This document shows, in pieces, positions 18,682 through 46,085 of a stretch of DNA of 64,000 bases (positions are counted from its first letter, which is position 1; each line of letters begins with the position of its first letter). The translations under genes and the position numbers were made by a program. Below the pieces are notes generated by a model. The model made no database searches and was not told where the DNA came from. It was given only the letters and a program-made list of their open reading frames with translations. The DNA is from Takakia lepidozioides (lineage: Eukaryota; Plantae; Bryophyta), in the NCBI GenBank assembly GCA_030704615.1, contig CM060733.1, positions 41,230,001 to 41,294,000 of the forward strand. Direction: 5' to 3'.

Positions 18682-21110
18682 ATGTCTTCTTGTGCTTCTG
18701 GGCAAATGACACCAAGTGAGGCAGGACAACTGAAAGAGGCTCTGCAAACTTTGAACCAAGGAGGTATTTCAGCACATTCAGATACTTCTGTCTGTCTCCT
18801 GCATAAGTGCATCAAGATGAAAGACCTAACAGCTGGAAAGGAGGTGCGCGCTCACATTATCCAAAGTGGATTCAAGCCAAATGTGTTTCTACACAACACC
18901 CATGTCAACATGTATGTCAAATGCAAGAGCATTGTGGATGCACACCAAGTGTTCGACAAAATGCCTCAACGAGGTTTGATCTCGTGGAACATAATGATTG
19001 CAGGATTTGCCAAGCATGGGTGTGGTAAGAATGCCTTGGAGACATATGAGCAAATGATGCGCGAAGGGGTGAAGCCCAACCAGGTCACATTCATTTGCAT
19101 TTGTAATGCGTGTGCAAGCCTGGCGGCCCTGGGAAAGGGAAAAGAGGTCCATGCTGACATCATGAAAGCTGGAATTATACCAGATGTCATTCTAGGCACC
19201 GCCCTGGTGGATATGTATGCCCAATGCGGGAGCATCAATGATGCAAGGTAGTGTTTGATGATATAATGGCACAAAATGTAGTGACATGGAATGCAGTGAT
19301 AGCAGGATATGCCCAGCATGGGTGTGCGAGGGAGGCTTTGGAGACCTATGAGCAAATGATCCTGGAAGGGGGGACACTCAACCAGGTCACGTTTGTTTGC
19401 ATTTGCAATGTGTGTGCGAATTTGACAGCCCTAGAGAAGGGTAAAGAGGTCCATTGTGATATCAAGAAAGCTGGAATTGTACCAAATATCATCTTGGAAA
19501 CTACCCTCATAGACATGTATACCAAATGTGGGAGCATCAAGGATACAGTGGGAATATTTGACCATATGGCTGAACGGGATGTGGTGTCTTGGAGTGCGAT
19601 GATCGCAGGATACGCCCAGCTTGGTTGTTGGATGGAGGCTTTGGAGACCTATGAGCAAATGATCTGCGAAGGAGTGAAGCCCAACCACGTCACGTCCGTG
19701 TGCATGTGCAATGTGTGTGCAAGCCTGGCAGACCTGGAAAAGGGCAAAGAGGTTCATGGTGACATCATGAGAGCTGGAATTGCACCAGATGTCATTCTGG
19801 ACACTGCCCTCCTAGACATGTACGCTAAATGCAGGAGCATCAAGGACGCAAAGGGAGTGTTCGACAATATGGCTGCACGTGGAATGCAATGATGGCAGGA
19901 TATGCCCAGCATGGGTACGGGATGGAGGCTTTGGAGATTTATGAGCAAATGATGTGGGAAGGGGTGAGACCACACCAGATCACGCTTGTTTGCGTTTGCA
20001 ATGTGTGTTCCAGCTTGGCAGCTCTGCAAAAGGGCAAAGAGGTCCATGCTGACATCGTGAAAGGCGGAATTGTACCAAATATGATTCTGAACAATACCCT
20101 TGTGGACATGTATGCTAAGTGCGGGAGTATCAAGGATGGAAAGGAAGTGTTCAACAATATGGTTGAACGAGATATGGTGTCGTGGAATGTGATGATGGGA
20201 GGATATGCCCAGCACGGTTGCCATAGGGAGGCCCTGCAACTATTTGAAGGAATGCAAAAGGAAGGCTTGAAGCTGGACAAGATCACCTTCATTTGTGTTC
20301 TCTCTCTCCATGTAGGCATGTTGGCCTAGTGGATGAAGGCAGGCATTACTTTCATTCCCTGACTCAAGATCATGATGTGACTCCAACAGTATGTGGAAGG
20401 ATAGCTACAATATCCCTGGAAAGTGGCAGGGGAATCCATTCTGATATCATCAAAACTGGAATTCAGTCAGACAATATTTTGGACACCGCTCTTGTCCACA
20501 TGTATGCCAGTTGCGGGAGTGTGAAGGATGTGCGTGAAGTGTTTGACAGAATGTCTAAGCACGATGTGGTCTCATGGAGTGCCGTGATCACAGGGTATGC
20601 TCAGCTTGGACATGGCAAAAAGGCTCTCAAATCTATGAGCAAATGCTCTGGAAGGGTGATGCCTAACAGAGTCACGTCTATTACCATTCTCGATGCCTGT
20701 GGTAGCTTAGGAGCACTGGAAAAAGGGAAGTAGATCCATGCTGACATGAAGGAAGCTGGAATTGTGTCATCTTTTAATTTGGAGACTACCCTAGTCTATA
20801 TGTATGCCAAATGCGGGAGTGTGAAAGAGGCACGTTAAGTGTTTGACAGAATGGATAATCTTATGTGGTGTCCTGGAGTGCAATGGTTGCAGGATGTGCT
20901 TAGTGTGGTCATGGTGAAGAGGCCCTCAAAATGTATGAGCAAATGCAAAGGGACCGAGTGATGGCTGACAAGGTTACATTCATCAGTCTTCTTAATGCTT
21001 GTGCCAGCCTAGGAGCCCTGGAAAGGGCCAAGTGGATCCATGCTGACATTATCAAAGCTCAAATTGCATCATATATTAATTTGGATAATGCCCTTGTCCA
21101 CACCTAGGCA
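18682..21110 (+). pseudogene. PLS-class pentatricopeptide repeat (PPR) pseudogene, organellar RNA-editing-factor type
   Basis: Repeating about 101-aa L-S-P triplets (GKEVHADI..G..PDVILGTALVDMYAKCGSI.DA..VFD.M....VV.WNA.IAGYAQHG...EALE.YEQM..EG..PN.VTF). Frameshifts near 19250, 19880 and 20310; stops at 20731 and beyond. No E/DYW domain seen. Confidence 0.92.
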
Positions 21111-25650: not shown

Positions 25651-25699
25651 AAATACTTATGAATCCAAGTGGGTTGCAAGCTGTGGTGGGTAGCGTGAT

Positions 25700-25890
25700 T
25701 GTCGTGCGCATACATATCGCTACACAACTACATCGCTATCCAAAACCACACAACACATGTGCACACCACACACTAGTATACCACTAGTCCACCACTAGTC
25801 TAGCCATTAGTCCAACCACTAGGCTACAACTAGTCAGTCACTAGGCTGCCACTATGCGGGCAGTCACTAGTCCACACAATCGCCCCCCTA
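25700..25890 (+). repeat. Left terminal repeat A (inverted copy at 31682-31849)
   Basis: Starts TGTCGTGCGCATAC. Differs from revcomp(A') by 3 substitutions and a 23-bp extra block of CCACTAGT-type motifs. Confidence 0.95.
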
Positions 25891-28800
25891 TCACTAGGGG
25901 CACTAGAGCCACGAGGGCAGTGGCTACACCTGCCGCTGCACCGGCAGCTTCAGCGAGTAGCAGTGGGACTGGTGGGACTGGTGGTACAGTAGCTACGACG
26001 TCCACCCAAGCCACTACCGCACCAGCACTAGTACCCGTGTCTGCCTTCAACCCTGTTGTGGAGTTCTTCGAAGAGTTGAGAGGGAACTACCAAGGGGTGA
26101 GGACAGAGAAGTTGCGGAGCTTGCAAGAGTTCCAACGGAAGCCGACCGAGAGCTTGAGGGAGGCTTTCACTCGCATGAAGCGCTTGATAAATGTAACCCA
26201 AGGGGTTACGGAAGCTCAGGCAGTCCAATTCTGGTATGGGATATTGGACAAGAAGCTGAGGAGAAGGGTGCGGGATGCAACTCTCCTACAAGCGGCCCAA
26301 CCCACCTTAGCAAATGTGTTTTTGCTGGCAGAGCGGATAGAGCTCAACATGGTGGAGGAACGAGTGGTCATGGTGGGATTTGCTAAGGAGACACCACGGG
26401 GTAGTGGTGCTTCTAGCCAACCACTACCTCAACGTGCTCAAGGCAACAAAGGGGCTCAGGTGAAGCTCAGGGAAGGGCAGAGAGGACCTCAGATGCAGGG
26501 GTCTCTCCTTTCATTTGCTGGCCAACAACGGGCGGATGTGGTGTGCTGGACATGTGGAGGACCCCATGTCAAGAAGGATTGCCCAGAGGGAGGCAAAGGG
26601 CCGGCACATGCATAGTCTACACAGTTGCAGTGTGGGCATTGTGGCAAGCACGGGCATGGAGAGACCCAGTGTTATGGTTTGCATCCTGAGTTGCGCCCAT
26701 GCCAGTTCCAAGGGAACAATGGTGGCCGGGGGCGAGGTGGAGCAGCCCAGAGAGGACGAGGTGGCCAGCCACGAGGTGCAGGCCAAGGGCAAGCTCAACA
26801 TGGCCAAGGACGCGGAGGTCAGGGGGTTGACCAAGGCATGGCCAACCGGCTTCAGCAGCTAGAGCAGAGGCTCGCTGCCATGGCTACAACTCAGGTGGTA
26901 CCGGCTCTAAGGCCGGATGGTCCACCTCCTGCTCTTGAGGGAGGAGATATGGGAGGCATGGGATTCATGTGTGAAGCAGCACTACCACTAGTGCAGGTGG
27001 AGTCTGCTGCAGCCGTGACTCGAGGAGCAGCACGAGTTCCTGAGCCACGAGGTGCAGAGGTGGAGTTGGAATCACAGCGTGGGGAGGCAAGTCGTCAGGC
27101 TAGGCTTCCTTAGTCATTCACATTGGCGGAGACAGTGTCGACGCCATCCATGGCACCTAGTTCTCGCCCGACTGTTACCGAGGCCGAGGTTACTATGTCA
27201 TTGGGGAGAGCTACACTGATAGCACCACTACCTAGTGTTGCCAAGGCTACGGCAGCTAGTGTGCTGCTAGGAGCGGCCACATCTGTGTGCCAAGCTCCAT
27301 TGTTCTCGGCTACCATAATTGCGACGCCGGGGGTAAGACCAGCTGAGGTGTTCAGGCTGGCAGCTACACTCTGTGAGAGTGGGGAGGTTACTTCATCTTC
27401 TGCGGAGATAGTGGGAGGTGTAGTGCCGGAGGGATCCTCGGATTTGAGGGTCAAGACTGCCACGGCGGCGCCCTGGCAAGCTGCAGCTGCCAAGTTGATG
27501 GAGCTGCCAGCTAGGCCAGCCATTGAGCGCGCCATGGTGACACCTAGAGTTGTCATGTTAGACAACCAGGATGACATTTTCTGTTTGAGTGGACCGGCAG
27601 GCAAGAGGTACCGGCCACTACGGGTCTTGTTGGACTCGGGAGCTCAGCCATTGATGCTAGGCAGAGCTGCTATTGCAGGCTTGGGCCTCACGGAGGCGGA
27701 TATTGAGCCTTGTCCTTTCCAGATACAGACGTCTCTAGGAGGATCGGAGCAGGCTCGGGGCATAACACGGCGTGAGTTGGCTATCATACTATGGCCGGAT
27801 CACCCTACAGATGGCTCAGTGATGCGAGCCAAGGCCATTGTGACAGACGTGGTCTCATACGATGTCCTGGTTGGTGGGGCAGTGTTGTACCCCATGGGCT
27901 TCACCCTGGATTTTTGGGAGGAGACAGCTTCCTATAGGCCTGCATGGCAGTCAGGGGAGGGCCGGCGTGTGCAACTCCCTATGACGTTCATAGGAGGAGT
28001 TGCGGTTGCCCAGCGAGGCAAGATGCCGACACTAGCAGCATTCACAGCGGCAGTGAGTTGGCCTAGAGAGTTGCTTGAGGGCAACGCTTATTCAGAGGAT
28101 GTGCCACCTCCGGGAGAGCAGGATGACATGTATGGTATGGCGGAGTTGCCTACCATGGTTGCTCAGACTCCATTGTGGGGCACAAGCAAGGATTTGCAGC
28201 GGGATGCTGATCGACGGGTTCAACAAGCCTGGGTGGAGGCTTTTGTACCGTCAGGAGAGGAGGAGAGTGCGGGGATTGCACCAGGACCACCTCAGTTGTC
28301 TTCATTGGACACCACACCTATTGTGTGGCAGTATCCGGATGAAGGCATTTGTCTTCTGGACTTGTTTGGCGGGATTAGCACCAGATTGGCTGCTGTATTA
28401 CAGGCAGGTGTACGAGTTCGGCGTTACCTATATGTGGAGAGGGATGAGACTGCACGACGCGTTTCACTTCGCCACTGATGGGCGATTCTCGGGCCAGGGT
28501 GATGGCCAGTGTGCATCAAGTCCGGTCGTGGCTTGGGTCAGCAGTGTTGCTAGATGCAGCTACAGTGGGGTCACGGGCTCATCGTCCACGGCTATGGTGG
28601 ACTAACTTGATGCCACCCGCACTGCTCAAGCGTGCATTTGATGGGGTGCAGCGGCCAGCACATCTCACAGTGGATAGCATTCTGGACACATGGAGGCAGT
28701 CTCAGCGTGTGAGACACGATGACCGTTCGTCTTTGGGAGTGGTCAACAAGGTAGGTCAACCACGAGCAGCATTACCTACACTGCTCAGCTTCCCATGATC

Positions 28801-31433
28801 GCATGCTTTCCGGGATAGTGGACTTGGCCTCCTGTGGGATGCTCAGTTGCAGCAGTTAGTGGAGCCTAATGCTGACGAGCGTGAGCGGGCAATGGGTTTT
28901 ACCACTGGTACCACGGCGGTGTCGTCTCTTTCTGAGGCATCACGTTGTCAAGTGTTGGGGCAAGCAATGGATCTCAATTACTTGACCTGGATTATCAGCT
29001 TGGCTATGGCTGAGCAACGCAGAGTGTGGAGTACACTTCCATCGATGGTCTCTCTGCCTACCGAGACGGTATAGGCAATGAGTGGGGGCAAGCATGTGAG
29101 GACCACGGGGTGCATGCATCCATGGCACACGTGGGAGGTGCTCAAGGTTCAAAGGGAGTTGGCAACCAAGGTGGCGATGAAAGATGAGGTTGGGGATTTT
29201 TCTCGGGTGGAGGAAGTCCTTGAGGATGAGATGATGGGGCAAGATGAGGCCTTGTCACTGACTGAGCAGGTAGGGAGTACTGCTCAAGAGGTTGCAACAT
29301 AGCAACCACTGGACGCGTCCTCTACCTCTAAGCCCACTGGACTTAAGGTTGCAGTTACGGAGGACAATTGGGAGCCTGACATTGGACCCATTGTCACCGG
29401 AGGAGAGAGACGACGTATACGGCGGTTCCTGAGGGCTTACAGGAATTGCTTTGCCTTCAGTTTGAAGGACTTGGGAGTACTGAAGGGTCAAGAGATCCGT
29501 ATTGAGTTGGCCATTGACACGCCAATCTTTTGGAAACCCTATAGATACAGTGACATGGAGAGGTCTTTGATTCAGATGAGGACTCAAGATCTCTGGGAGG
29601 CAGGTTTGGTGGAGCTCTCTGGTGGAGAGTATGCTTCAGCCACAGTGATGCCAGCCAAGAAGGATGTCTATGGTAATTGGACGGAGAGACGTATGTGCGG
29701 TGATTACCGGCCTGTAAATCGTCAGACCAAGTCCGATAAGTATGCCATGCCAACACCAGAGGAGATCTTTGATGCCATCGGGCATACTAAGGTCTTTAGC
29801 ACTTTGGATTTACGATCCGGATATCACCAGTTGCCAATCAAGGAGGCGGACAAGCAGAAGACGACATTCTGGGGGATCAATGAGCACGGCAAGGATTGCC
29901 TATATCAGTAGCGGTTCTTACCATTTGGGCTTAAGAATGCTCCTGCAGAGTTTCAGAGAGTCATGGATAGTATTCTAGCAGGGGTGGACTTTGCTCGGTG
30001 CTACATAGATGACATCATCATCTTTAGTGTTACGATGGAGGAGCATGAGAGACACCTTCAGGTGGGAGAGGGATTGGATCTTGCAACGAGCCAAGAGGTT
30101 CAAGTGGGAGGGGATACACCTACTTCAAGTGTGGGAGGATGGTCGGGTGAGAATTGTGCCTCACCCCACACAGCGTGCACGGTTAGTGCGGCATGCCCAT
30201 GAGGAGTTGGGGCATTTTGGAGTGCGACGCACTCACAGTTTACTGCAAGGGCAGTATTGGTGGCGTGGTATGCATACAGAGGTGCAACAGTTCGTGGCTA
30301 GGTGCATGGTGTGTGACAGGGTACGTGCTTCATTCAACACCCCTATATCACAGTTGCATCCTTTACCAATCATGGGCTACAGGTGGAGTCTTGACTTCGC
30401 AGGACCGTTGCCACTGACTATGCGCCACCACAGATATGTGTTGGTGATGGTGGAGCACTTCTCCAAGTGGATTGAGTTGGTTCCATTGCCTGACAAGGCT
30501 AGTGAGGGGGCTGCGTATGCATTCTTGGATCGTGTGCTTAGCCGATTTGGTGCTCCAGCTGAGGTACTCACGGACCAAGGGAGAGAGTTCTTGGGGGAGT
30601 TTCAGGCTTTGTGTGATAAAGCCTTGATAGACCACCGCACCACTTCTCGGGATCATCCTGAGGCCGATGGCTTAGCAGAGAGAGTTGTTCAGACGGTGAA
30701 GAGGGGTTTGCGCAAGTATGGCTTGCAGAAGGGACACCTAGGAGATTGGGATCTTCAGGTTCCTTGGTTAGCCATGGGCTACAGGTTCAGCAAACAAGCA
30801 TCACTTGCCTCATTCTCACCATATTTCCTTATCTTTGGCCGAGAGCCGGATTTGCCTGCAGCCATTCGTAGGGACACTGCTCAAGTTCTTAACCTTGACG
30901 ATCCGGACGTGTGGGTACATGCATGTGATCAGCGTGCAGAATTGTTCAAGAAAGTCATGTCCATGGCTTTTGATAACCTTGTCATTGCACAGCACCGTGA
31001 TACGTTGAGGTATGTCACTATACGTGCTGGAGGATATCGTCATGGGGTTCGGAGGTTTAGCCCTGGTGACTATGTTTATCTGCAGCAGACTGCTCCTACG
31101 ACTCTAGATGTTACTACAGGGCGGGTTATTCTGAGGGTTCGAGAGGTGTTGCCCTCAGGGGTCCTGATCTTGGAGGGTCGGGATGGCATGACTTGGAAGG
31201 ACCATGTGCGTAATTGTGCGCCATGTCACCTTCCCAATGTCGATGGCAGAGTTGACCCAAACTTGGCAGTGGTACCTGCAGGTTTGAGGTGCATGCTCTG
31301 TGGGTCTGCCAAAGGGGCAGCCACCATGCTGGTGTATGATCGATGCTCAAGGGGTTGGCATATGGGATGCTTGACACCACCTCTTGAGAAGGTTCCTGAC
31401 GGAGATTGGTTGTGTCCACACTGCTTGGGATAG
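25854..31433 (+). pseudogene. Degenerate gag-pol: Gag with two zinc knuckles, aspartic protease, C5 DNA methyltransferase, RT, DDE integrase, C-terminal PHD finger
   Basis: CWTCGGPHVKKDC and CGHCGKHGHGETQC; VLLDSGAQP (about 27625); RT motifs RMCGDYR, LDLRSGYHQ, PFGLKNAP, YIDD (30002-30013); integrase H-H-C-C, SLDF, TDQG, AERVV; PHD 31289-31423. Several TAG/TGA stops. A deletion at about 30062 removes the end of RT and RNase H. Confidence 0.92.
28340..29010 (+). other. DNMT3-like cytosine-5 methyltransferase domain inside pol (central catalytic motifs deleted in this copy)
   Basis: Motifs I/II LLDLFGGIST...YLYVE; motif VIII LDAATVGSRAHRPRLWWTNL; motifs IX/X ERERAMGF..GTT....LSEASRCQVLGQAMD. 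PC and ENV motifs are absent at the frameshift near 28478. Confidence 0.85.
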
Positions 31434-31681
31434 TGGCAGTGGACATGACTGGAGGCAGCTAACAAGACATGGGAGGCCAAGCTCATAGGAGTCAATACAT
31501 GAGATCTCAAGCTCAAGTTCACAGGTTGCAAGATGGCGACTAACGATGGGGCAACTCTTGCACCCGGCCTCTTGATCTATCGAGTTTGAGTGTAGTAGGG
31601 ATAGTGGTGGAGGACTTAGTGAGGCTATGGTCACTATCACATCTTGTGGCTACCTGGACTTAGAGGGACCTAAGCACCAGC

Positions 31682-32172
31682 TAGGGGGGCGATTGTGTGG
31701 ACTAGTGACTGCCCGCATAGTGGCAGCCTAGTGACTGACTAGTTGTAGCCTAGTGGTTGGACTAGTGGTATACTAGTGTGTGGTGTGCACATGTGTTGTG
31801 TGGTTTTGGACAACGATGTAGTTGTGTAGCAATATGTATGCGCACGACAGCTGTCAAGTTATTTTACCACTAGTGTGAAACTAGCTAGGAAATAGCTAGC
31901 TTTTACATATTGACATTTGGGATTGGCCCAAGTGTCAATCCAGGGGTCAAGACAGATTTAGGCCCTGGAGTGGTTATCTTCACGGCAAGCGCGGGAGGCT
32001 CATCTTTCTCGAGTTGAGCCTCACCGTGCCTAGCTATGGCGTCGTAGTGTGGATTCCCCATGGCGTGGGGTGCACTTGGCTTGACTTGTATTTGAGTGAT
32101 GAGGTTATATATGCATGAGTGTATGCTTCAGCTTTGTGAGCTCGCATGAGCTTATTCTTCTTCTTTATCACT
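31682..32172 (-). repeat. Internal complementary block A'-GC-B, equal to the reverse complement of right terminus + GC + left terminus
   Basis: Junction reads GCGCACGACA-GC-TGTCAAGTTA (31840-31861). Confidence 0.93.
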
Positions 32173-32897
32173 GTCACAGCCCCTCACAGCCCCACAGGCC
32201 ATAGGGCACAGCCTGTCATAGCCCCTCATAGCTCGCCACAGCCTGTCACAGCCCGTCATAGCCCCACAGGCCACAGGGCACAGCCTGTCACAGCCTGTCA
32301 CAGCCCTTCACAGCCCGTCACAGCCCCACAGGCCACAGGGCACAGCCTGTCACAGCCCGTCACAGCTCGCCACAGCCTATCACAACCCGTCACAGCCCCA
32401 CACGCCATAGGGCACAGCCTGTCACAGCCTGTCACAGCCCCTCACAGCCCCTCGCAGCCCCACAGGCCACGGGGCTTAGCCTGTCACAGCCCGCCACAGC
32501 CTGTCACAGCCCCTCACAGCCCCTCACAGCTCGCCACAGCCTGTCACATCCCGTCACAGCCCACAGGCCACAGGGCACAGCCCCTCACAGCCCGTCACAG
32601 CTCGCCACAGCCTGTCACAGCCTGTCACAGCCCCACAGGCCATAGGCCACAGCCTGTCACAGCCCGCCACAGCCCCACAGGCCACTGGGCACAGCCTGTC
32701 ACAGCCCGTCACAGCCCCACAGGCCACAGGGCACAGCCTGTCACAGCCCCTTATAGCCTGTCACAGCCCCACAGGCCACGGGGCTCAGCCTGTCAAGCCC
32801 CTCACAGCCCGTCACAGCTCGCCACAGCCCGTCACAGCCCCACAGGCCATAGGGCACAGCCTGTCACAGCCCCTCACAGCCCGTCATAGCTCGCCAC
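32173..32897 (+). repeat. Minisatellite of roughly 10-bp CACAGCC(T/C)GT units with higher-order CCCCACAGGCCACAGGG spacers
   Basis: Dozens of CACAGCC units; the 247-aa ORF at 32146 is a repeat artefact. Confidence 0.95.
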
Positions 32898-34229
32898 TAA
32901 ACTCAATGGCAAACAACCAAGCCCTGCTGGTTCCCAGCCCTTGTGAGCACTCATTCAAGCACTCTCCTTGGCCATAACATCTATCTTAGAGCCTATTCCA
33001 GCCCCCTACACCTGCTGCTTCAAGAGTTGCGCTCCCTTCAAGCTTGAAGTTGAAACCCCAACTCACATAGGCCCTACAAGTGCTTTTCTTTCACTCCAAG
33101 TGGAAACCAGCCCTAGACCTTCCGTTCTAGCTCTCTAAAGCTTGAAAACAAGAGCCTCAATGGGCTGAAGGCATGCTCCACACATGCCCCACTCTCACCA
33201 TAAGAAAATCAGCTCATTTGCTTCATTTCTTGCACCCACAAACCTGAAAATACAAGCTTCAGCAGGCTGAAAGCATGCTCCACATGCCCTACAGGGAAAC
33301 CAGACCCTTCCTTCCTTTCTTGCACTCCCACACCTGAAAGTGCAAGCCTTCACCAGGCTGATAGCATGCTCCACACATGCATTTCCCTCACATAAGGGAA
33401 GTCAGCCCTTCCCTCTTCCTTGCTTGCCCTCCAAGCTTGAAGATGGAAGCTTCAATGAGCTGAATACATGCTCCACACATGCAACCTCTTCACACAAGAG
33501 ATATCAGCCCCCTATCTTGGCTCCTTAGCTCTTTGATGCTCTCTAAGACAAGACTAAGCGCTCCACAGCCCTTGCCAAGCTCCTGAAACCCTAAGGCTTA
33601 CATTTCCAGCCACAAGACACTCCTCTTGTGGTGCAAGAACTTTTCTTCCAAGCTCTGAAACCCTAGGTGCACATTCCATGGCCTTGCCGCACCTCTTAGC
33701 TCTTGTTCCAGCCCCGCTCTTGCCATGGCAAGAGCCCTCATACCGCTGGAGTTTCAGATTGAAACCCCCAACTCAACATAACCACAAATGCATTGGCTTG
33801 CATACAAGAGAAATCAGCCATCTCTCTTCACTCATACCTCCTTATGAGCTTGAAGTTGGAGCTCCCGATAACTGTGACTTACATCTAACACCCTCGCAGC
33901 TCCACATTGCTGCAGCTCCTTAACTTGGCCTGCAGCTGAAGAAGACGACCACCAGTTCACCCATTCGAGACCAGCATCTCCCCCGCTTCACACTAGAAGC
34001 CCAAACTTGGTTGCCATAGCGTTGAGCTATGCAACGCCGCTCTTCAACATAGGCTATCCGCCTCTCTATCCATTGCAAACCTGCAACCTGTTCGTCTTTG
34101 CACTCTATCCACTTTGGATAGGCTCATGCATGGATCCCTGCACTCTAGGCTGAACCGCTTCTCATGAAAACACAAGTGCTACAAAACAACTCGAACCTGG
34201 CACTCACAGACTCGAGCTGATCTTTCTCG

Positions 34230-34558
34230 AGTGATAAAGAAGAAGAATACAAGCACAAGCTCATGCGAGCTCACAAAGCTGAAGCATAAACTCATGCATA
34301 TATAACCTCATCACTCAAATACAAGTCAAGCCAAGTGTGCCCCACGCCATGGGGAATCCACACTACGACGCCATAGCTAGGCGCGGTGAGGCTCAACTCG
34401 AGAAAGATGAGCCTCCCGTGCTTGCCGTGAAGATAACCACTCCAAGGGCTAAATCTGCCTTGACCCTTGGATTGACACTTGGGCCAATCCCAAATGTCAA
34501 TATGTAAAAGCTAGCTATTTCCTAGCTAGTTTCACACTAGTGGTAAAATAACTTGACA
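34230..34558 (+). repeat. Right terminal repeat B' (inverted copy at 31852-32172)
   Basis: Ends AAATAACTTGACA. About 9 substitutions and one 8-bp indel versus revcomp(B), counted by eye. Confidence 0.95.
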
Positions 34559-35687
34559 TGATTGTAAAATGATAGCAATGGAGGCGACGAGGTTCCGGGT
34601 TCAATTCTTGATGGTAGGCTAGCTCTGGTAGTGTAACCCCGGTTAATGTAACCCTCCACTTGGTGTAACCCTCTGAAACCCCGATTTCTCATGTAATTTT
34701 GGTTGGTCCATTTCATCACATTTGGACTTAGTCAAATTTCGAGACCAAGTGTGGGTTACACCGACTGGAGTTACACACCTCGTCGTGTAACCCGATGTAA
34801 CCCCGAGTGGAGTTACACACGTGGAGTTGACATTCTTTCAGTTCCATGTCACTCTCAAGAGAGGGTGGGGAAGATTTAACATGCCGGAAACCGGCGTACC
34901 ATCCTGTCAGAGGTTGCACATGTGCATTAAGTTCTTACATATTCCTATTATCTTCCAAATAAGAGGCTCTTCCCAGTGTGTGGGTACAAGGGTGAGTATA
35001 TATATATATATGATGCCAGCCGAAGCTAGCGTAAATAAGAGCCACTCCCCCGTGTGTGGGTACAAGGGTGAGGAATACTTAGAGATGGAGAGGTTCCAAA
35101 GGTCCACAAGATTGATATTGATGCGGCCGGAGAGCCAGCCACCTTATTTTGATGCACAAAATGTACTCGTAAGACGTTGTTTGCTATAGAATTGTGGCCA
35201 TTGACCCGTACCCAATTTGAGCAACACAAAAAGGACAAAAACTACCTGTGTTATAAGAGGCTAATGCCGGTAGTATGACTTATCTTTGATCCACAAAGAG
35301 TGAAATTTCTGCAAGTTGACCGCCCATGTGGCAGGCCGGGAGCTTGCCATGTGTCTAACTTGTCAATTGTCAAGAAACTCACAAATTATTTATGCAACTT
35401 GGAATTTTGCTCTAAATCTAAATGTCTTTTTGCGCAGTAGTTTAGATGTTTACAAAGCATAGACTCACCCTAGGAAATTGGATTCCAAGTAAAAACGTGG
35501 GACATTTTAAGAGCGTTGATCTTAATAGAGCAAATTTGGATAGTTTACCCTCCTAAATTTACATACAAAGCAGCCCCACCCAGGTTTTGATCTTTCACTC
35601 TGAAATTGTGAGAGAAACACCTGTTATGTGCCCTGTATTGTGAATGTGGAGGCTATTCATCCAAGAAAAACTTGCAACTTGCAGAAT

Positions 35688-37962: not shown

Positions 37963-40900
37963 CTAGTATAATCCACAGCCCATGACAATACTTGCTACCT
38001 CCTTGGTCTTGGTATAAATGTACCCATGTACAACTTGGAAGGCAATTAATTCCTTCAACATGGTACTTGCTTCAGACCAGTACCTCGCAAAGTGATGATC
38101 CTCAATGGGTCGATTATTCGGAAGAACCTTAGTCATAGTTGCCACGGGCAGCCAAATGCGCATGATCTGGTAGTAATGTGCCAACGACTGCGGAGGACTA
38201 AATTCCTTCCAAGCCAAATCCAACACAATGGGAATTTGGTTGAAGGGCATAATCATAGCCCGACTGTACTCCCGTGCAGCATGAGTCTTAGGTGGATTAA
38301 AAGCAGCATCCCCCCATACCTCAGGCTATGGTGTGGCTGTAGTAACAACAGGGTCAGCTACCTACACAGTCACTTGTTGTGGTATTGGTAGCACTGGCCC
38401 TTCTACCACTGGCATCTCCTGCACCCCTTGCGAAGAAGACTAAAAAATTAGAGTTCTGACTTGTAAATAAGTAGCCATCAGCTGCTCCTTAGGTACAAAG
38501 ACTCTCTTGTCAATATTTGAACTCAGGTCATCCACCTGAGTCTGCAGGCCTTCTACATCCTCCTGTAGCTCCGCTATCCTACTATAGACATTGTCTATAG
38601 TAGTTGTGGCAATGTTCTGCACCTGTAGTCTGAGCTCATTCATCTCGCCTTGGGTGAGCTTCCGTGGTGCTTTGCCTTCCACCGGCCCTTGTGCTAACCA
38701 GACTTGCATAAGGTGGTTATCCACCAAGTTGTGTGTGGCACCCCTAAGAGTCTACTTCTCTTTGAGCCTGTACACATCTAACTGCTACTGTAAAGCCTAC
38801 ATGCGCTTTGCATGAGGTTCAACCAAGCTCGCATAGGCAGCAGCCAGATTATTGGCTTCCTTCCAAGCCTTGTTAGCCATAGAGAGTTCATTTCTATTTA
38901 CCATGACCGTTTGTTGCAACTCCAGGATGTACCTCTCTTGGTCAGCTTCAACCTGTCTGTATTGCTTGAAAGTATTCTCATTGTAACAGATTGTATTCTT
39001 CATATCAACAATGAGTTTCGCATGTTCGACTGTCTCTGCCTCTGCCTTCATACATCTCTCCCCTTGTCTGTTAACTTCTAATGCAGTTTGCTCAAGAATA
39101 GTTGTGAGTGTAGCACATTGTATGGTCATCCTCTCATGTACTGCCTGCAACTCTGTATGTAGTGCATTCACTTCTTGCAACTTGCCCTCATGCTTCACCT
39201 GCATTTGGTATAACTGTTGTTTATGTGCTTCGTGCAACAGGTCATGCGCGAGACATGCTTCAATCAAATGTTCCTTGGCCAACTGCAAAGCAGCTTTTGT
39301 ATCCTCTATAAAAGATGAGATTGACACCTTGTTTGCACACTCAATGGCAAGTTGAGCCTCAAACTCCTTTCTGAGCTCCTCCCTCAAAGCTGCCAATTGG
39401 GTAGATGGAACATGGGATTTCACATAAGTGCCTAACAAATTAAGCATTTTGCTTATGGAACTCATAAGCATGGCCTGCTGAGGGTCTTCATGGGGAGCTT
39501 GTTGCTGTTCTCCCTGATCCTCAACAGTGTGATGTCTCACCAACCATTCATGCCATTGCCCTACCAGATTTTCTTCCTAAACCACCTCATCCGCCATAGG
39601 TGCTGCAGTGTCTTGATATTTTACCCTTGGTACCTCCATCACAGGTGTGGGTATTACATGCTCAGCAGGGTTTCCCCTGAACAACCGCTGCACCTCTGGA
39701 ATCACTGATTCCCTTACCAAGCCAGAGTTTTCATAGAGAAGGTCACCCTTCTCAATTTCGGCCACGACCTGCTCTGTAGTGGGAATGTCCAACCTTTCTC
39801 CTTCCAGAGCAATTGGGGGTGATGTCACAGCATATACTAACTGTGGAACCTCTAAGACAACGGAGTCAATTGGTTGGGGTGGCTATGGTATCGAAGTGAC
39901 TTCCTCTTCCCTCTCTCAAGGCCGTGCTTCCAATAATAGCAGCTCTCTGTGCTGTTGTGCCCCATCCTACACAAGAGCTTGGGAAACATTATCGTGCGGT
40001 TTCCGTGAAGCCAGTGGATCCGCCACTACAGTCATTCCCCGCCTCTGTCTCTTAGACTAGTGTTGCGCTGTCAGTCCACCCTCACTGTGTGAAGAGCCTT
40101 GCTCTTCAATTGCAGTGGTTTCTGCCTCAAACACTCCCATCTCCTTACGTTCCCGAGTATCAAGTATGCAAGAATCAAGAATTATTTGGGCAATGACTGG
40201 ACCAGACACAATGATCGGAGACTAGCAGCAGTTCCCTGTAACCTCTTAATCTCGTCCACCAATCCATTGTACATTAACTCCGCCCAAGCGACATCTTCTC
40301 CCCTCAAAGCTTTCAGTATCTCCTCTGTGAATGACCTGCTCAAATACTGTTGGTTCTATTTCATGGCAAACAGAACGTTCAAGATTAACTTCCCTAAGCC
40401 CTGGGTACTCGGCTTTGGTACAAGCGTAGCCTTGAGTTTTAAAGAAACTCCCTTCTTGGAACAAATTCCCTATCTGCAATCTTGTCTGTGCTCATCCACT
40501 TCCACATGTCCTGATGGCAAATCAAACAATTGCTGCAGGTACTGGGGAGTAATTTCTATATCTACTCCCCTCACCTGAGTAACTCCTGTCCAAGGCTCAA
40601 AATTCTGAAGAAATTGTATCATGAACTGCCGATGATGCAAGGACCAGTCCTTGCGTAATAGCCCCTCCAATCGCAACTCCCTTAGCAGCTGTACTGCCTG
40701 CGGTGCCGCAATTGTTTGCTTCTGCAGTATCGTCGTGCTCTTCACCCTGATATCCTCCATTCCCCTCACTCTCTTCATTCTAGACAAACAGAAAGGCTTT
40801 GTTTGAAACAGCTGAAGGAAAGCTTGCAGGGCACAGAGCATGAAGGTGTGGTTGGCACAGAATGAAATGGATAAGTGCTTGTAAGCCTGTGGGGCTTGCA

Positions 40901-41130
40901 AGTATCGATTTAGAGAAAATGTACTCTCCGTTCGTCTGTCCTTGTGCCACTGTGTAAGTAGTAAGGCAAGCGTGTAGTCTGTTATTTCCGCCATAGCTTC
41001 AAAGCTATAGCTTTGATTGTCTCTCCTGACGAGACGTCCGTTACTCGGAACTACGCCGACTCTTGCGCTCATAATTTCTCTAAATTCTTGATCTTGCTTC
41101 TTGGAAAATACCCTCTGCAGGTAATTCTGG
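37963..41130 (-). pseudogene. Degenerate accessory ORF(s) 3' of integrase (Athila/Tat-type extra ORF-like domain plus coiled coil)
   Basis: QFLQNF..VRGVDIEITPQYLQQLFDLP, then ALRGEDVAWAELMYNGLVDEI past a stop; coiled-coil ORFs at 39543-38797 and 38727-38440. Confidence 0.6.
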
Positions 41131-41759
41131 CTCATGATTGGCTGTTGACTCTGTGATTGGTTTTGTAATTTAATTCCCTTCCGTGGATTTCCCCCCCTGG
41201 ACTGTCCACTAGGATAGCACATGTGACAAGGATTTTGCTTTTGGGTACTTGTAAAGGGTTCCGTTACCCTTTCCCTGTATGCATTAATGGGCCCACAATA
41301 AATTTCGGTTAACGTGCCGGGTAGGTACTTTGACGGCCAATTTTGTCTTCCTTCTTGATGACACCCGTTCTTGCAATTCGTGTCCGGCTGTGTGTCACAC
41401 CCTGGCGTCCACGTGTCCATTTCTAAACCTGCCTCCGTCCACTTTTTCGCCGGCCACTCTCCAGATGTTAACCCACGTCCACCTGTCACTGATCCTATGG
41501 ACTGTTTAGCTGTGACAGGCTGTGTCATACTGTGGTACATTGTGATAGGCTGTGTGGCACTGTGATAAGCTGTGATAGGCTGTGTGACGCTGTGATGGGC
41601 TGTGATAGGTATGCGAACACCTGTAGTTCCCGCCTTGGTCATATATGCTCGGCTTAGCGACAAGTGCTCCATACTCCGTTGGTATCACAGGCACAGCCCG
41701 TGACTGCTTTTGCGTTTCAACATGCAAATCGTGCTGCAATGGTTTGTCATGGATACCAC

Positions 41760-44700
41760 TGTACCCCTTCAACTTATTGGCATTGACTCTTCCCAGCATC
41801 TCTTTGTTAATGGTTTGTAACATGGCTGTGTTGTTATCATACATCTTTTGTATGACATAAGGTCCTTTCCATGGTGATTTAAGCTTAGAAGCTTTAATCT
41901 TTCCCTTCTTCTGCAACCAGAGAACCAAATCTCCCGTCTTAAAAGTCTTTAATTTGCCTTCATCAAACTGTTCCTTCATCTTCATCTGAATTCTGGTCAT
42001 GTTATCAGCTGCATCAGCACGTACTTCTTCCACATGGTATAATTCATGTTTCCTGACCTTAATTGAATCTTCCAATTCCATTCTCTTTCCCCATTCCGTT
42101 CTCATGGTAGGTAACAAGAATTCCACTGGAAGTAAAGCTTCCATACCATAAACTAATTGGAATGGTGTATACTTAGTGGTGACTTTATATGAAGTCCGGT
42201 ATGACCACAAAGCTGTCAGCAGCTTTGTATCCCAATCCGTTCTGTTTGCATTGACTATCTTAACTAAGATAGTACATATTATTTTGTTGGTAGCCTCTGC
42301 CTGCCCATTACCTTGTGGGTAATACGTTGTACTTTTCCTATGCACAATCATGAACTCTTTAGTCAATAGTTCAATGGTCTCATTAATGAAGTGACTTCCC
42401 TGGTCACTGATAAATTCCAAGGGACAGCCAAATCGTGTAAGTATGTTCTCATACAGGAACCTTGCTGTGGACTTGGCTGTGTTGTCCCTCAGAGCTTTAG
42501 CTTCCACCCACTTCATAGTATAATCAGTGGCTGTAATTATATACTTGTTCTGTGTATTCTTGGCCGGTGGGTTAATTGGTCCAACAAAGTCTAGTCCCCA
42601 TTTTTGAAATGGTTCAGTAGGCATCGTAGGATGCAAAGCCATCTTCCCAGATCCTTGCAAAGGTCCTAGCCTCTGACATTCATCACAACTCTGACAATAC
42701 TTGTGTACATCCTTGAACAAAGTAGGCCACCAGTAACATGCAAGTAGTATCTTCCTACTGGTAGTCTCTTCTCCAAAATGTCCTCCAGCCACTCCTTTAT
42801 GAACTTCCTCCAAAACTTTATTTACTTCATGGTGGTACAAGCATCGTTTAAGTACTCCATCAGGTCCTAGCTTATACATTCTGCCCCCTACCATAGTATA
42901 AGGTAAAGCCTTGATAGCGATTCTCTTCCTCTGCTCCTTACCATAACTAGGTGGGCACTAACCATGAGTAAGGTAGTATCTGATTGGCCACTGCCAATCT
43001 AACCATTCATCTGTACTTCCTTGCACCTCCATTGCAAATAAACTCGCATCAGGTAATTGGTCGTCTACTCCTATGGCGGGCTCTCCTGTTGTTAAGCGTG
43101 ACAAATGATCTACCACAAGATGCAAACGGCCAGGCTTGTAAACAACTTCAAACTCAAACTCGTGCAAAATCATTAACCACCTTGCTATCCTTCCACTTAT
43201 CAAAGGTTTGTTCACCAGATATATCAGAGCCTGGTGATCCACATAAAACATAAACTTTCTTCCCAATAGGTAATGCCTGAATTTCTTGACTGCATAAATC
43301 ATTGCCAGTACTTCTCTTTCAGTTGTGCTATAGTTCCTTTCAACACTGTTCATCAACCTGCTAGCATAGTATACCGGTGAATCTATATTTCCTGTAACAT
43401 TTTGGGCTAACACCGCTCCCAACGCTTCTCCTGAGGCATCACAGTGAACATGAAATACTACATGCCAGTGAGGGTTAATCAGCACAGGTGTAGTTGTTAC
43501 TGACAATGTAAGTTCCTCAAAAGCCTGTTGACATTCAGCTGTCCATGCAAACACTGCATCTTTCTTCAGAAGCTTGCTCAATGGTGCTGCTATCTGTGCA
43601 TACCTTTTGACAAATCTTCTGTAATAACTGGTTTGTCCAAGGAATCCCCTTAGACTCTTAACATTTACTGGTGGTGGAGAGGCTTTAATGGCCTCTGTCT
43701 TCCTGGGATCCACCAGAAGTCCCTTCTTACACACAATGTGTCCCAAAAGCACCCCTGAGTTCACACAAAAAGTACACTTCTCTGGATTCAGGCCCAGACC
43801 TCTCATCCTGCATCTGGCCAAACATAACTCCAATTTATGCAAGTGCTCATTCTTAGAGCTGTACACACTGAAATCATCCAAGAACACCTGCATGAAATCA
43901 TCCAGATACTCATGAAAAGATTCATTTATCACTCTCTGAAAGGTTGCTGGTGCATTACAAAGTCCAAAAGGCATGACTTTGTATGCATAAGCACCCCAGT
44001 CTGTGATGAAAGCTGTCTTTCCCTGGTCTTCTTCTGCCACTTGCACTTGATTATAACCACTGAAGCCATCCATGAATGAGTACATCTCATGGCCTGCCAC
44101 AGTGTCCAATACCGCTTCTGTGAATGGCAAATGGAAAGGATCTTTCTTCGTGCAAGCATTCAACTTCTTATAGTTCACACAAACTCTCAGTTTACCATTT
44201 TTCTTGGGAACTATCACAATGGGTGACAACCAAGTTGTATACTCTATCGGGTATATAAACTTAGCCTCAGCCAACTTCTTGATCTCTTCTCCAACCTTCT
44301 GTGCATAGTTGGGATTCATTCTGTACCTTGCCTGTTTGATTGGTACTGACCCTGGTTCCAGTTCAATCTTATGCTAACAGATCTCAGGTGGTATCCCTTT
44401 TAGATCCTCGTAGCTCCAAGCAAATACATCTTTGTATTTGATGAACAAACTCTTAGCTTCCTCAAAGAATTCTGGCTCCAAATCAGCCCCTACCTTCACC
44501 ATCATCGGTTCCTCTTCAGTTCCCACATTCACTTCTCTCACTTGCTCATCAGCTGTGATTGTCCAACCAGTCACCACTTCATCCTGTAAACTCACAGTGG
44601 CTGGTTCCTCTAGGATTTCCATTTCTCCTTCTCTTTCTTCATAAAAATGTGGTGGGTAACTGCTTATTTCACCTTCAATTGGTGTTGCTGTCACTACACC

Positions 44701-46085
44701 ACAACAGATACCTTTTAAACAACTTAGGCCTTCCAGCTGCATCTCTGCAACCTGCTCCCACTCTAGGTGTGCAGCGAACAGGGTAGCTTCCTGCTCCTCA
44801 TCCAGTCCTCCCCTCCAATCATACTCCCTGACCCCTCGAGGTCTTCTCGTAGCAGGTAATCTACTAGATTTCTTAGTGGTAATTTGTATCTTGTGCATCC
44901 CATCATGCACAGTTAGTAACTGGGAATTCCAGTCATGGAATACCCTGGCCTGTTTCAGCCACGGACGTCCCAACAATAAGGAGTAAGCTTCCATGACTTC
45001 ATCCATTTTTAACACAGTTACTGTGATCATAAAGATCATCTTTTGAATCTGTATCTTAACTCCTCTTATCAATCCCAATGGCTGTACACTTCTTTGATCT
45101 GCCATTGTTACTGTAAATGGGGCTGGTTTCATGTTACTTAGACCAAGCTTATGCCTTAATTGGTCTGTCATGATATTCACTCTAGAGCCTCCATCTATCA
45201 GTACATCAGTTAGTTCTGTGCTTCCAATTCTCAATTGGATTACTGGCATAGAATCATCAAAGTCCCTGACTGTTTCTCGCCCTTCCGGCTTCACATTATA
45301 CTTCTGGTACAACACATGGCCTAACCATGTGAGCTGCCACCACTGGGCCCTCATTCACAGGAGCTCTCATTCTGGTGTCTAATCCAGAATGAACAGGCTG
45401 CCTTGCGATGTCCTGCCTGATTACAATAGTAACACAGTTCTTCACCATTGGGTCCTCGCCCTTGGTCTGCTCTAGGATTATTTCTGTAATCCTGATTCCC
45501 TGTCTGGTAATTCCCCCTTGGATTACCCTGATAGTTGCCCCTAGAATTTCCTTGGTAATTCCCTCTTGGATTACCTCTCCCTTCCATACCTTTGTTATAA
45601 CCACCGGGCCTACCATAGTGGTCCTGATCACTGTTTCTTCTTGGCTGGGGCTGCACTTGATGCACCCTTACTTGCCTAGGTTCTCTAGCTGCTGTCCTTC
45701 TGTTGTAGTAACAATTCTCAGTAGAATGGTTATCCATTTTACAGATAGTACAATGTTTCTCCTTCATGTGGCATTCAGTGGTGGTATGGCCTTCATTCTG
45801 GCACTTTGCACACCAAACACCCTTCCTCCAATGTGTTGCAGCCTCTGTGGCATACTTCTTCAAGATTTCTTCTAATCTTTTCTCATAGTTATCCCTCTTC
45901 AACTTTTCCTTTCTCTTACTCTTCCTCTTCAGCTCCTGTTCTTCTTCCTCATCTGACTCATCCTCAGAGTCCTCATCATCATTTTTTTTCTCTCATGAGC
46001 ATTCCCAATTGCTCAATTCGGTTTGCTGTTTCAAATGCCTCCTCCACTGTATTATGGGGTAACATAACCAAATTCAAAGATTGTT
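41760..46085 (-). pseudogene. gag-pol of second Gypsy element
   Basis: Three CCHC knuckles (CAKCQNEGHTTTEC, CTICKMDNHSTENC, CYYCNQAGHRKAAC); VLIDGGS; RT MDGFSGYNQ, MPFGLCNAP, FLDD; RNase H HCDAS, YSTTERE; integrase GGHFG..CDEC, WGLDF, SDQG, QAE, W.GPY. Stops at 44374 and 42958. Confidence 0.93.

Follow-up and report, generated by a model that had tools for sequence, protein, structure and literature searches.

A probable one-off, internally inverted Gypsy-Dnmt3-type retrotransposon copy in Takakia lepidozioides, and a candidate integrase site inside the long terminal repeat of its clade

What kind of retrotransposon carries two unrelated pairs of inverted repeats and no direct long terminal repeats (LTRs)? 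The question is raised by a locus of the bryophyte Takakia lepidozioides (assembly GCA_030704615.1, contig CM060733.1, positions 41,230,001 to 41,294,000 of the forward strand; the window, below, is this whole stretch of 64,000 nucleotides that was analysed). A unit of 8859 bp within it (25700–34558) contains a Ty3/Gypsy-type gag-pol region and has the layout A..A'-GC-B..B', where A and A' form one pair of inverted arms and B and B' another. An original prediction, made from the sequence alone, had proposed that the unit might represent an undescribed class of retrotransposon. Comparison with loci from other genomes and from metagenomes indicated that it is probably (we estimate roughly 70%) a known kind of element in a copy that arose once, broken and internally inverted, as an aberrant by-product formed before integration.

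Repeat searches, self-BLAST and direct reading of the sequence confirmed the repeats of the unit, the TGT/ACA ends of all four arms, the junction ACA-GC-TGT and the TGAT flanks. The gapless parts of A and A' are 97–99% complementary, and their overall identity is 86% because A holds a 23-bp insertion; B and B' are 95% identical over 329 bp. Repeats of 170–330 bp at 95% identity are far above chance expectation. A and B have nothing in common past TGTC, which is all that the left and right termini of the unit share. The left end reads gtagcgTGAT followed by TGTCGTGCGC, the internal junction reads GCGCACGACA-GC-TGTCAAGTT (GC at 31850–31851), and the right end reads AACTTGACA followed by TGAT. 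As had been claimed, the internal block corresponds, in reverse complement, to the right end, GC and the left end, i.e., to the joined termini. When the ends were read, neither the A..A' module nor the B..B' module had a target-site duplication (TSD) of its own, and TGAT was found on both sides of the whole unit (a 4/4 match has a chance of 1/256). That the unit was inserted as a whole with a 4-bp TSD was upheld further by eight complete related copies that also carry 4-bp TSDs, making nine with the window copy. No further copies of A, B or pol were identified by self-BLAST within the 64-kb window. The coordinates of the features are collected in Table 1.

The gag-pol region is one long plus-strand reading frame, which a frame map showed to be broken by six in-frame stops and two frame changes. 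Pfam matched weak Retrotrans_gag and aspartic protease domains (the latter at ~27612–27707), RVT_1, Integrase_H2C2, rve and a PHD finger; homology to the gag of relatives begins at ~25980–26043, and a CCHC knuckle is present at ~26541–26588. The order gag, protease, reverse transcriptase (RT) and then DDE integrase (IN) is that of Ty3/Gypsy elements, and the window copy also has a polypurine tract (PPT), a primer-binding site (PBS) of self-priming type, TG..CA ends (TGTC../..GACA) and a TSD in the 4–6 bp range. A direct LTR pair is absent in the window copy, and its relatives never have a full LTR at both ends. The assignment to Ty3/Gypsy, with a DDE integrase and without a conventional LTR pair, was sound, as shown by the H2C2 and rve matches and by arms that are only inverted. 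No phage-integrase domain (tyrosine recombinase) was detected by Pfam in any piece of the element.

Comparison by tblastn with an almost intact copy from the liverwort Calypogeia fissa (L001, in which there are just two stops; its three open reading frames (ORFs), 1339, 797 and 248 aa long, encode DNA_methylase, RT, RNase H, IN and PHD domains) revealed three losses in the window copy. These are the first ~177 aa of the gag-containing ORF, gag N-terminus included; 96 aa of the DNA methyltransferase (DNMT) core with the detectable C5-methyltransferase motif (junction ~28472); and 343 aa comprising the RT thumb and RNase H (junction 30061/30066). Both apparent frameshifts are in fact such deletion junctions. 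Sequence flanking the missing DNMT core aligns with L001 and forms a remnant at 28472–29164; there was no C5 methyltransferase Pfam match (PF00145) in the window element, the 96 aa bearing the motif having been deleted. RNase H sits between RT and IN in L001 and in two other related loci (L002 and L004). The missing gag N-terminus, which is conserved in relatives, was not found elsewhere in the element, including the antisense of the segment between B and B' (M), and a 247-aa ORF in M (32146–32886) had no Pfam match and lies in tandem repeats. Gag, RT and DDE integrase had been identified correctly, then, in a copy that is defective, with stops and three deletions.

Protein searches with the integrase and PHD ORF identified hundreds of relatives, with up to 85% identity (the nearest 79–85%). 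Their hosts are the liverworts C. fissa, Riccia sorocarpa and Marchantia polymorpha, Sphagnum, Klebsormidium nitens and Haematococcus, and many more relatives are on bryophyte-associated metagenome contigs. The closest named relatives, from Riccia and Calypogeia, are 79–83% identical. Proteins of K. nitens are 52–54% identical over 65–96% of the integrase/PHD query (E-values 1e-186 to 1e-123), and tblastn with the window ORF gave 52% for the K. nitens locus L172. In L002 and L001 a cytosine methyltransferase (PF00145, DNA_methylase) is encoded between protease and RT. These sequence comparisons assign the element to the Gypsy-Dnmt3/PHD-integrase clade of streptophyte retrotransposons, of the KnitGypsy-Dnmt3 kind. 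KnitGypsy-Dnmt3 of Klebsormidium was described as having Gypsy domains and DIRS-like repeats, in the order A-coding-B-A-B in the lettering of that source, in the legend of Fig. 4c of de Mendoza et al. (2018, Nat Commun 9:1341, PMC5890265); the paper gives the repeat structure in this legend only, without a mechanism. No further mention of the element was found in the literature that we searched. The proposal of an undescribed class does not stand, as the Gypsy-Dnmt3 kind and its repeat structure have been on record for Klebsormidium since 2018, at least in that legend (PMC5890265), and L172 has the same junction as the window copy.

To place the layout of the window copy, related loci from C. 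fissa (L001), R. sorocarpa (L003), K. nitens (L172) and ENA/JGI assemblies (L002, L004, L174–L176) were compared, together with 80 metagenome contigs (L092–L171) found by their integrase protein. In about 45 related loci the layout is either direct (X..Y-GC-X-Y) or repeat-free (X..Y). Segment Y (73–160 bp) begins directly at the 3' edge of the PPT and ends GCACGACA, and segment X (330–430 bp) starts TGTCA; the PPT, AGGGGGGCG, lies ~164 bp past the integrase/PHD ORF in most loci where the motif was found. In a first, split-repeat form (X-leader-gagpol-PPT-Y-GC-X-Y), Y, GC and X are followed by a second direct Y that closes the element, and a direct X is at the start where upstream sequence is available; 4-bp TSDs flank L001 (GTCA), L099 (AAGG), L101 (TCTC) and L139 (CATA). 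In the second form, seen at more than 20 loci, Y ends GACA and unrelated flanking sequence follows directly; such repeat-free copies (X-leader-gagpol-PPT-Y) have 4-bp TSDs in L093 (TGTT), L105 (TACA), L140 (ACTA) and L149 (ATTA). A third form, with an inverted X arm at the right end, is rare (L128/L129 and L143) and represents independent insertions, because the flanks of L128/L129 and L143 differ.

The window copy shares its central junction with these relatives. ACA-GC-TGT is present in L001, L003, L002, many metagenome loci and L172, and the Y end of A' is 85–88% identical to that of L003. Because Klebsormidium L172 has the same junction (GACA-GC-TGTCATG) and the Y-X-Y order, the integrase attachment (att) site that we assign to this palindrome appears to be conserved across streptophytes. 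Every integrated copy is bounded by the two halves of ACA-GC-TGT. Like KnitGypsy-Dnmt3, the clade combines a C5 DNA methyltransferase with a Gypsy gag-PR-RT-RH-IN polyprotein and has a GACA-GC-TGTCA junction between Y and X, and the A-coding-B-A-B order is present in the relatives of the window copy, L172 included. The window copy itself differs in the loss of its DNMT core and in having inverted instead of direct repeats: it keeps the four repeat units and the B-GC-A junction of that order, with two of the units inverted. The inverted layout as a norm of the family was not supported by the ~45 loci, and an inverted Y upstream of gag was found in none of the roughly 15–20 related loci with more than 6 kb of upstream sequence. 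Other copies, then, essentially lack the inverted layout, an outcome that tells against the original prediction; they lack ordinary LTRs too, and the expectation that direct-LTR finders would miss the element applies to the whole family as well.

Some variation was observed at the joints. The junction dinucleotide is GC in most copies and AT, AC or GT in decayed ones (L092, L101, L115, L130, L143, L152, L160 and L165). All three replacements are reachable from GC by C-to-T changes within CAG/CTG contexts, a pattern that would be compatible with deamination at methylated CHG sites, the element itself encoding a DNA methyltransferase. The joint between the second X and the second Y (X2|Y2) is exact in most split-repeat copies, and Y2 has no preceding PPT in L001, L003 and the other split-repeat loci in which this joint was examined. 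One locus (L101:10837-10855, and L103, which is the same locus) has a 19-nt insertion, TTGTGTTATGATAGTACCG, at X2|Y2 that looks like an imprecise circle junction.

A few loci and searches stand apart. L004 (L004:1-21140; L005–L013 are the same locus in several JGI samples) encodes RT, RNase H and IN, has no repeat of at least 40 bp in 21 kb and no ACAGCTGT junction, and is probably another repeat-free copy. The Marchantia locus L173 is a fragment in which no repeats were found. The X of L172 (L172:1607-2093; Klebsormidium nitens DF237449.1) holds a near-perfect palindrome, GAAAGAATGAAGC..GCTTCATTCTTTC, similar to those that L001 and the metagenome family have where transcription presumably starts, and a palindrome at the start of the LTR repeat region (R) may be conserved in the clade. 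A search of viral contigs with the 14-mer junction CACGACAGCTGTCA returned 78 chance matches only.

The boundaries of X and Y suggested how the repeats of the family arise. In three lineages the end of X abuts a short sequence complementary to a site 150–170 nt inside X: CGAGAAAGAT in the window, ACTTAGAGAACT in L001 (12 nt) and CTCAAAGAACTATGTT in L099 (16 nt). In the window the complement is 10 nt, or 13 nt when the last three bases of X are counted. The sequences differ among the lineages and the position is alike, and at most 1/1000 shuffles reached the observed lengths. Self-priming of Tf1 is established knowledge, and we infer that this complementarity is a signature of Tf1-type self-priming. 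As in Tf1 and Tf2, the sequence after U5 (the unique 5' part of the LTR) is complementary to the presumed R start over 10–16 nt, and there is no tRNA-type TGG PBS; Tf1 differs in integrating via its outer LTR ends and keeping two full LTRs. Because the PPT lies directly before Y and the PBS directly after X, Y-GC-X would be the LTR made by reverse transcription, and PPT-Y-GC-X-PBS would correspond to the layout of plus-strand strong-stop DNA. It had been proposed that the element regenerates its ends instead of using LTR strand transfers; the positions of the PPT and PBS indicate ordinary LTR-type transfers.

Based on these boundaries, we lean towards a mechanism in which the clade, from Klebsormidium to liverworts, would have moved the integrase site to a palindrome in the middle of the LTR, with integration from circular or long-tailed cDNA. 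Reverse transcription would yield a Y-GC-X LTR by Tf1-like priming ~150–170 nt into X. Integrase would then ignore the outer LTR ends and cut within the LTR, at the palindrome ACA-GC-TGT; with a cut after each CA, both resulting ends would have a recessed CA-3' and their 2-nt overhangs would be complementary, as in the products of normal integrase 3' processing. Integrated copies would accordingly begin with X (TGTC...) and end with Y (...GACA), flanked by a 4-bp TSD. Cutting of both LTRs of a linear cDNA, or later Y-Y recombination, would give the repeat-free X-leader-gagpol-PPT-Y, and cutting of one site in a form like a 2-LTR circle would give X-leader-gagpol-PPT-Y-GC-X-Y, the 'DIRS-like' split direct repeat. 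The split-repeat form would be the only one that can be copied again, because only it keeps the 3' R, and its joint between X end and Y start resembles a 2-LTR circle junction. Against direct insertion of the repeat-free copies, these could be Y1-Y2 recombinants.

This mechanism was stated in no paper found in the literature searched. Precedents exist in foamy virus and HIV-1, for which integrase is reported to cleave palindromic LTR junctions of circular DNA (PMC1180852, PMC1905944). In these retroviral 2-LTR and inversion circles, a palindrome of two half-sites is likewise cleaved to integration-competent ends; the palindrome proposed here differs in lying inside each LTR and not at an LTR-LTR junction. 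If the mechanism is correct, most genomic copies would have no terminal repeats and be invisible to LTR finders, and by-products bounded by the two ends (split-repeat, hairpin-ended and inverted forms) would be inserted as well.

The orientation of the parts of the window copy followed from several observations. GC skew is -0.32 to -0.40 in M and mostly ~+0.1 to +0.3 in gag-pol; in intact L001 it is +0.2 to +0.38 over the full length, leader included. M is about equal in length to the L001 leader. The window PBS, which is next to B', is complementary to 32002-32013 in B and to the copy of that site in B'. Because of this PBS position, the negative skew of M and its leader-like length, the right third of the element is the canonical 5' end on the minus strand. 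Arm A contains the complement of the PPT, CGCCCCCCT, and the integrase half-site at its outer end, TGTCGTGCGC, is the Y end in reverse complement. On the minus strand, the order runs X1-PBS-leader | X2'-GC-Y1'-PPT'-gagpol' | PPT-Y2, so that the window copy is, by its sequence order, a minus-strand split-repeat copy in which the block gagpol-PPT-Y1-GC-X2 appears inverted. Such a copy could never replicate, because its promoter and PBS face away from gag-pol and because it has lost the DNMT core, the RT thumb with RNase H, and a part of gag.

Three breakpoints are required by this order. At the first, B is a full-length X that ends to the nucleotide at the U5/PBS boundary; the second is at the start of U3 (the unique 3' part of the LTR), where the Y of arm A is still preceded by the PPT; and the third is inside gag, where the N-terminus is lost. 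The first two would be the natural termini of a full-length linear cDNA, one of them with the plus-strand primer retained. We propose that this linear cDNA would have broken inside gag and that both natural termini would have been joined to the wrong sides of the break, giving a circle with two inverted att sites. Integrase would then have opened one att site and inserted the whole circle once, duplicating TGAT. Self-priming, a circular substrate and misjoining before integration are all inferred here; the anatomy of the copy, its place in the family, the att site and TSDs of that family, the antisense orientation of the leader and the deletions were shown directly. The window copy would have the topology of retroviral inversion circles, and the PPT is kept at its junction; PPT retention is typical of aberrant retroviral circle junctions.

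The third form of related loci makes such an origin plausible. L143 is collinear with PPT-Y-GC-X-PBS of L099 and then continues into the reverse complement of X 1–183, ending at the X-start half-site. The same arrangement, in which PPT-Y-GC-X-PBS leads into the first ~180 nt of X in reverse complement, was observed at L128:3235-3878, L129:1286-1929 and L143:1157-1798; all three contigs break before the left end. It would arise if plus-strand strong-stop DNA copied an over-long self-primer reaching the start of X, which predicts a direct X at the left end. These forms show that integrase inserts any molecule bounded by two half-sites and that aberrant cDNAs of the clade reach the genome. With them a one-off origin of the window copy is plausible, and its odd layout need not be a design.

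Several points weigh against a one-off accident before integration. Inverted X arms at the right terminus recur in another family (L128, L143), so that inverted forms are not unique in the clade. The hexamer ATCACT stands at both joints of the inverted block (J1, 25890-25895, and J2, 32167-32172, where it closes arm B), and an 11-nt match, ATCACTAGGGG, exists between 'X end + PPT' and the gag-side junction; neither is accounted for by this origin, and they may mark microhomology. Either loop could have changed its orientation since insertion if the inverted arms recombined with each other, which leaves the original isomer uncertain; the four loop isomers are interconvertible, and none of the four is the canonical copy. 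The misjoining may have been due to end joining or to template switching. Integrase autointegration is unsupported as its cause, since J1 and J2 lack the 4-bp inverted duplication that sets retroviral autointegration apart from these joints. It was rejected also for want of terminal dinucleotide loss: J1/J2 retain an extra CT after the X-end CA and the entire PPT. Primer retention of the L143 type was rejected for the window copy, whose leader end at J2 shows no complementarity to the PBS. Gag homologues extending across J1 were sought in a protein collection; the best matches were 50–68% identical, and none was convincing over the ~45 initial residues that arm A and J1 encode.

A later origin of the inversion was the best surviving alternative, and we consider it unlikely. 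According to this explanation, a normal split-repeat copy was inserted on the minus strand and its block gagpol-PPT-Y1-GC-X2 was inverted afterwards by chromosomal rearrangement, which would leave the TSD and outer ends unaffected; with arms that are 95–96% identical and other deletions present, damage after insertion did occur. However, the breakpoints coincide exactly with the U5 end/PBS boundary and the U3 start, each of which has a random chance of ~1e-3. A plain inversion would not create the PPT beside Y2, since L001, L003 and the remaining split-repeat loci examined have none where X2 meets Y2, and the canonical copy has no inverted repeats to drive an inversion.

Considerably less probable, in our assessment, is that the window copy represents a heritable, replicating architecture of double inverted repeats on a DDE integrase, the inverted counterpart of the PAT-like form of the clade. 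A single-stranded cDNA would fold so that A pairs with A' and B' with B, the termini would meet across GC, and the sealed circle would be reopened by integrase. DIRS1-like elements have a tyrosine recombinase, inverted terminal repeats, an internal complementary region and no TSD. The window copy resembles them in having an internal block complementary to its joined termini and no direct LTRs, and the geometry is exact. It differs in its DDE integrase with an H2C2 zinc domain in place of a tyrosine recombinase, its 4-bp TSD, outer arms that are not repeats of each other, and a PPT and PBS at LTR-type positions; the inverted layout is, moreover, exceptional in the clade. The canonical copies L001, L099, L101, L139 and L172 share the A1-int-B1-A2-B2 repeat order of PAT and Ngaro, so that direct split repeats, the norm of the clade, would parallel the PAT/Ngaro member of a pair with DIRS1. 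They differ from PAT and Ngaro in the Gypsy enzyme set with a DDE integrase and in their TSDs, and their repeats are explained by an integrase site within the LTR made by RT. The two independent insertions of another family that end in an inverted X arm would favour a recurrent inverted form, yet strong-stop read-through of an over-long self-primer accounts for the L143 type. In addition to the lack of an inverted Y upstream of gag in related loci, X-PBS-leader is antisense to gag-pol in the window copy, where there is no known promoter toward gag-pol and an X transcript would be antisense; gag N-terminus, DNMT core and RNase H are missing; and the PPT in arm A fits a cDNA terminus with a retained primer, not a designed repeat.

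We regard an assembly artefact, in which a repeat-flanked segment was placed in the wrong orientation, as very improbable. Segments between inverted repeats are orientation-ambiguous for short reads, but the canonical copy has direct repeats only, from which misorientation cannot make inverted arms, and no flip isomer restores it. The arms are also distinct sequences, differing by 4–5% and a 23-bp indel. Ginger DNA transposons are cut-and-paste elements that encode only an integrase-like transposase and have true terminal inverted repeats (TIRs). The window element shares with them TGT..ACA ends, 4-bp TSDs and a Gypsy-like integrase; it differs in having both gag and RT, which Ginger lacks, and its apparent TIRs are two different LTR halves. 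Scarcely credible is an origin from two unrelated TIR elements (A..A' and B..B'), Ginger-like or resembling miniature inverted-repeat transposable elements, side by side or nested: all four ends are indeed TGT/ACA and 4-bp TSDs typify Ginger transposons, as the original prediction pointed out (cf. PMC2836005), but neither module has its own TSD, A' holds the PPT of the element and B' adjoins its PBS, and the A'-GC-B junction, one conserved contiguous unit in relatives from Klebsormidium to liverworts, refutes it.

Taken alone, the window copy is a dead, scrambled retrotransposon, and the family behind it is more informative. A Gypsy clade of bryophytes and charophytes would have an integrase that cuts within the LTR and would for that reason leave no LTR pairs behind in genomes; standard LTR-based annotation would miss or mis-bound its elements, and dating by LTR divergence would be inapplicable to repeat-free copies. 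The integrated forms (repeat-free, split-repeat, hairpin-ended and internally inverted) may be a natural record of cDNA species before integration, circle-junction forms included. They would also offer a concrete route to 'DIRS-like' repeat layouts with a DDE integrase, which bears on the relation of DIRS, PAT and Ngaro to ordinary LTRs.

Table 1. Features of the retrotransposon copy, with positions in the window
Feature	Position	Strand	Basis or remark
TSD, left copy, TGAT	25696..25699	.	matches 34559-34562
Arm A, reverse complement of PPT+Y (Y2 when the element is read on the minus strand)	25700..25890	-	inverted repeat of 31682-31849; negative GC skew, antisense
Junction J1, ATCACT directly after arm A	25890..25895	+	antisense PPT-Y switches to sense gag here
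Defective gag-pol	25891..31433	+	Pfam, frame map, tblastn against C. fissa L001
RT	29333..30061	+	Pfam RVT_1
Integrase H2C2	30165..30329	+	Pfam
rve	30375..30659	+	Pfam
C-terminal PHD finger	31290..31424	+	Pfam
Arm A', PPT+Y1, sense, ending GCGCACGACA	31682..31849	+	inverted repeat with arm A
PPT AGGGGGGCG	31683..31691	+	Y starts directly after the tract in related loci
Putative palindromic integrase (att) site ACA-GC-TGT inside the LTR made by RT	31847..31854	.	same junction in relatives
Arm B, X2 (rest of U3, then R, U5), sense	31852..32172	+	length agrees with X of relatives, 330-342 bp
ATCTTTCTCGAG, putative R start, complementary to PBS	32002-32013	+	inside arm B
M, 5' leader, antisense to gag-pol	32173..34229	-	GC skew, PBS next to B'
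Tandem repeats in M	32174-32955 and 33116-33510
PBS CGAGAAAGAT	34220-34229 (reverse complement)	-	adjoins B'
Arm B', X1; outer end AACTTGACA, the other integrase half-site, reverse complement of X start	34230..34558	-
TSD, right copy, TGAT	34559..34562	.

Other features of the window were also identified. An ORF at 8194-9282 (minus strand) with DDE_1 and HTH_Tnp_Tc5 domains is a pogo/Tc5-like DNA transposase; a 280-aa ORF beside it (7330-8172) had no Pfam match, and an 804-aa ORF at 12762-15176 (minus strand) matched no Pfam family at E<=0.001. The ORF at 18682-19248 (plus strand) has pentatricopeptide repeats (PPR) and a weak match to a Transposase-associated domain, and may be a host PPR gene fragment beside transposon remains. 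A second Gypsy-type element (40470-45902, minus strand) encodes protease, RT, RNase H and integrase and is just ~30% identical to L001 pol; its C-terminal ORF, of 399 aa, had no Pfam match. It has no obvious LTRs, there being no direct or inverted repeat of at least 80 bp within 36-50 kb. Part of the tandem repeats in M (32212-32663) is 72-77% similar, in opposite orientation, to 41494-41609 in the C-terminal ORF of this second element.

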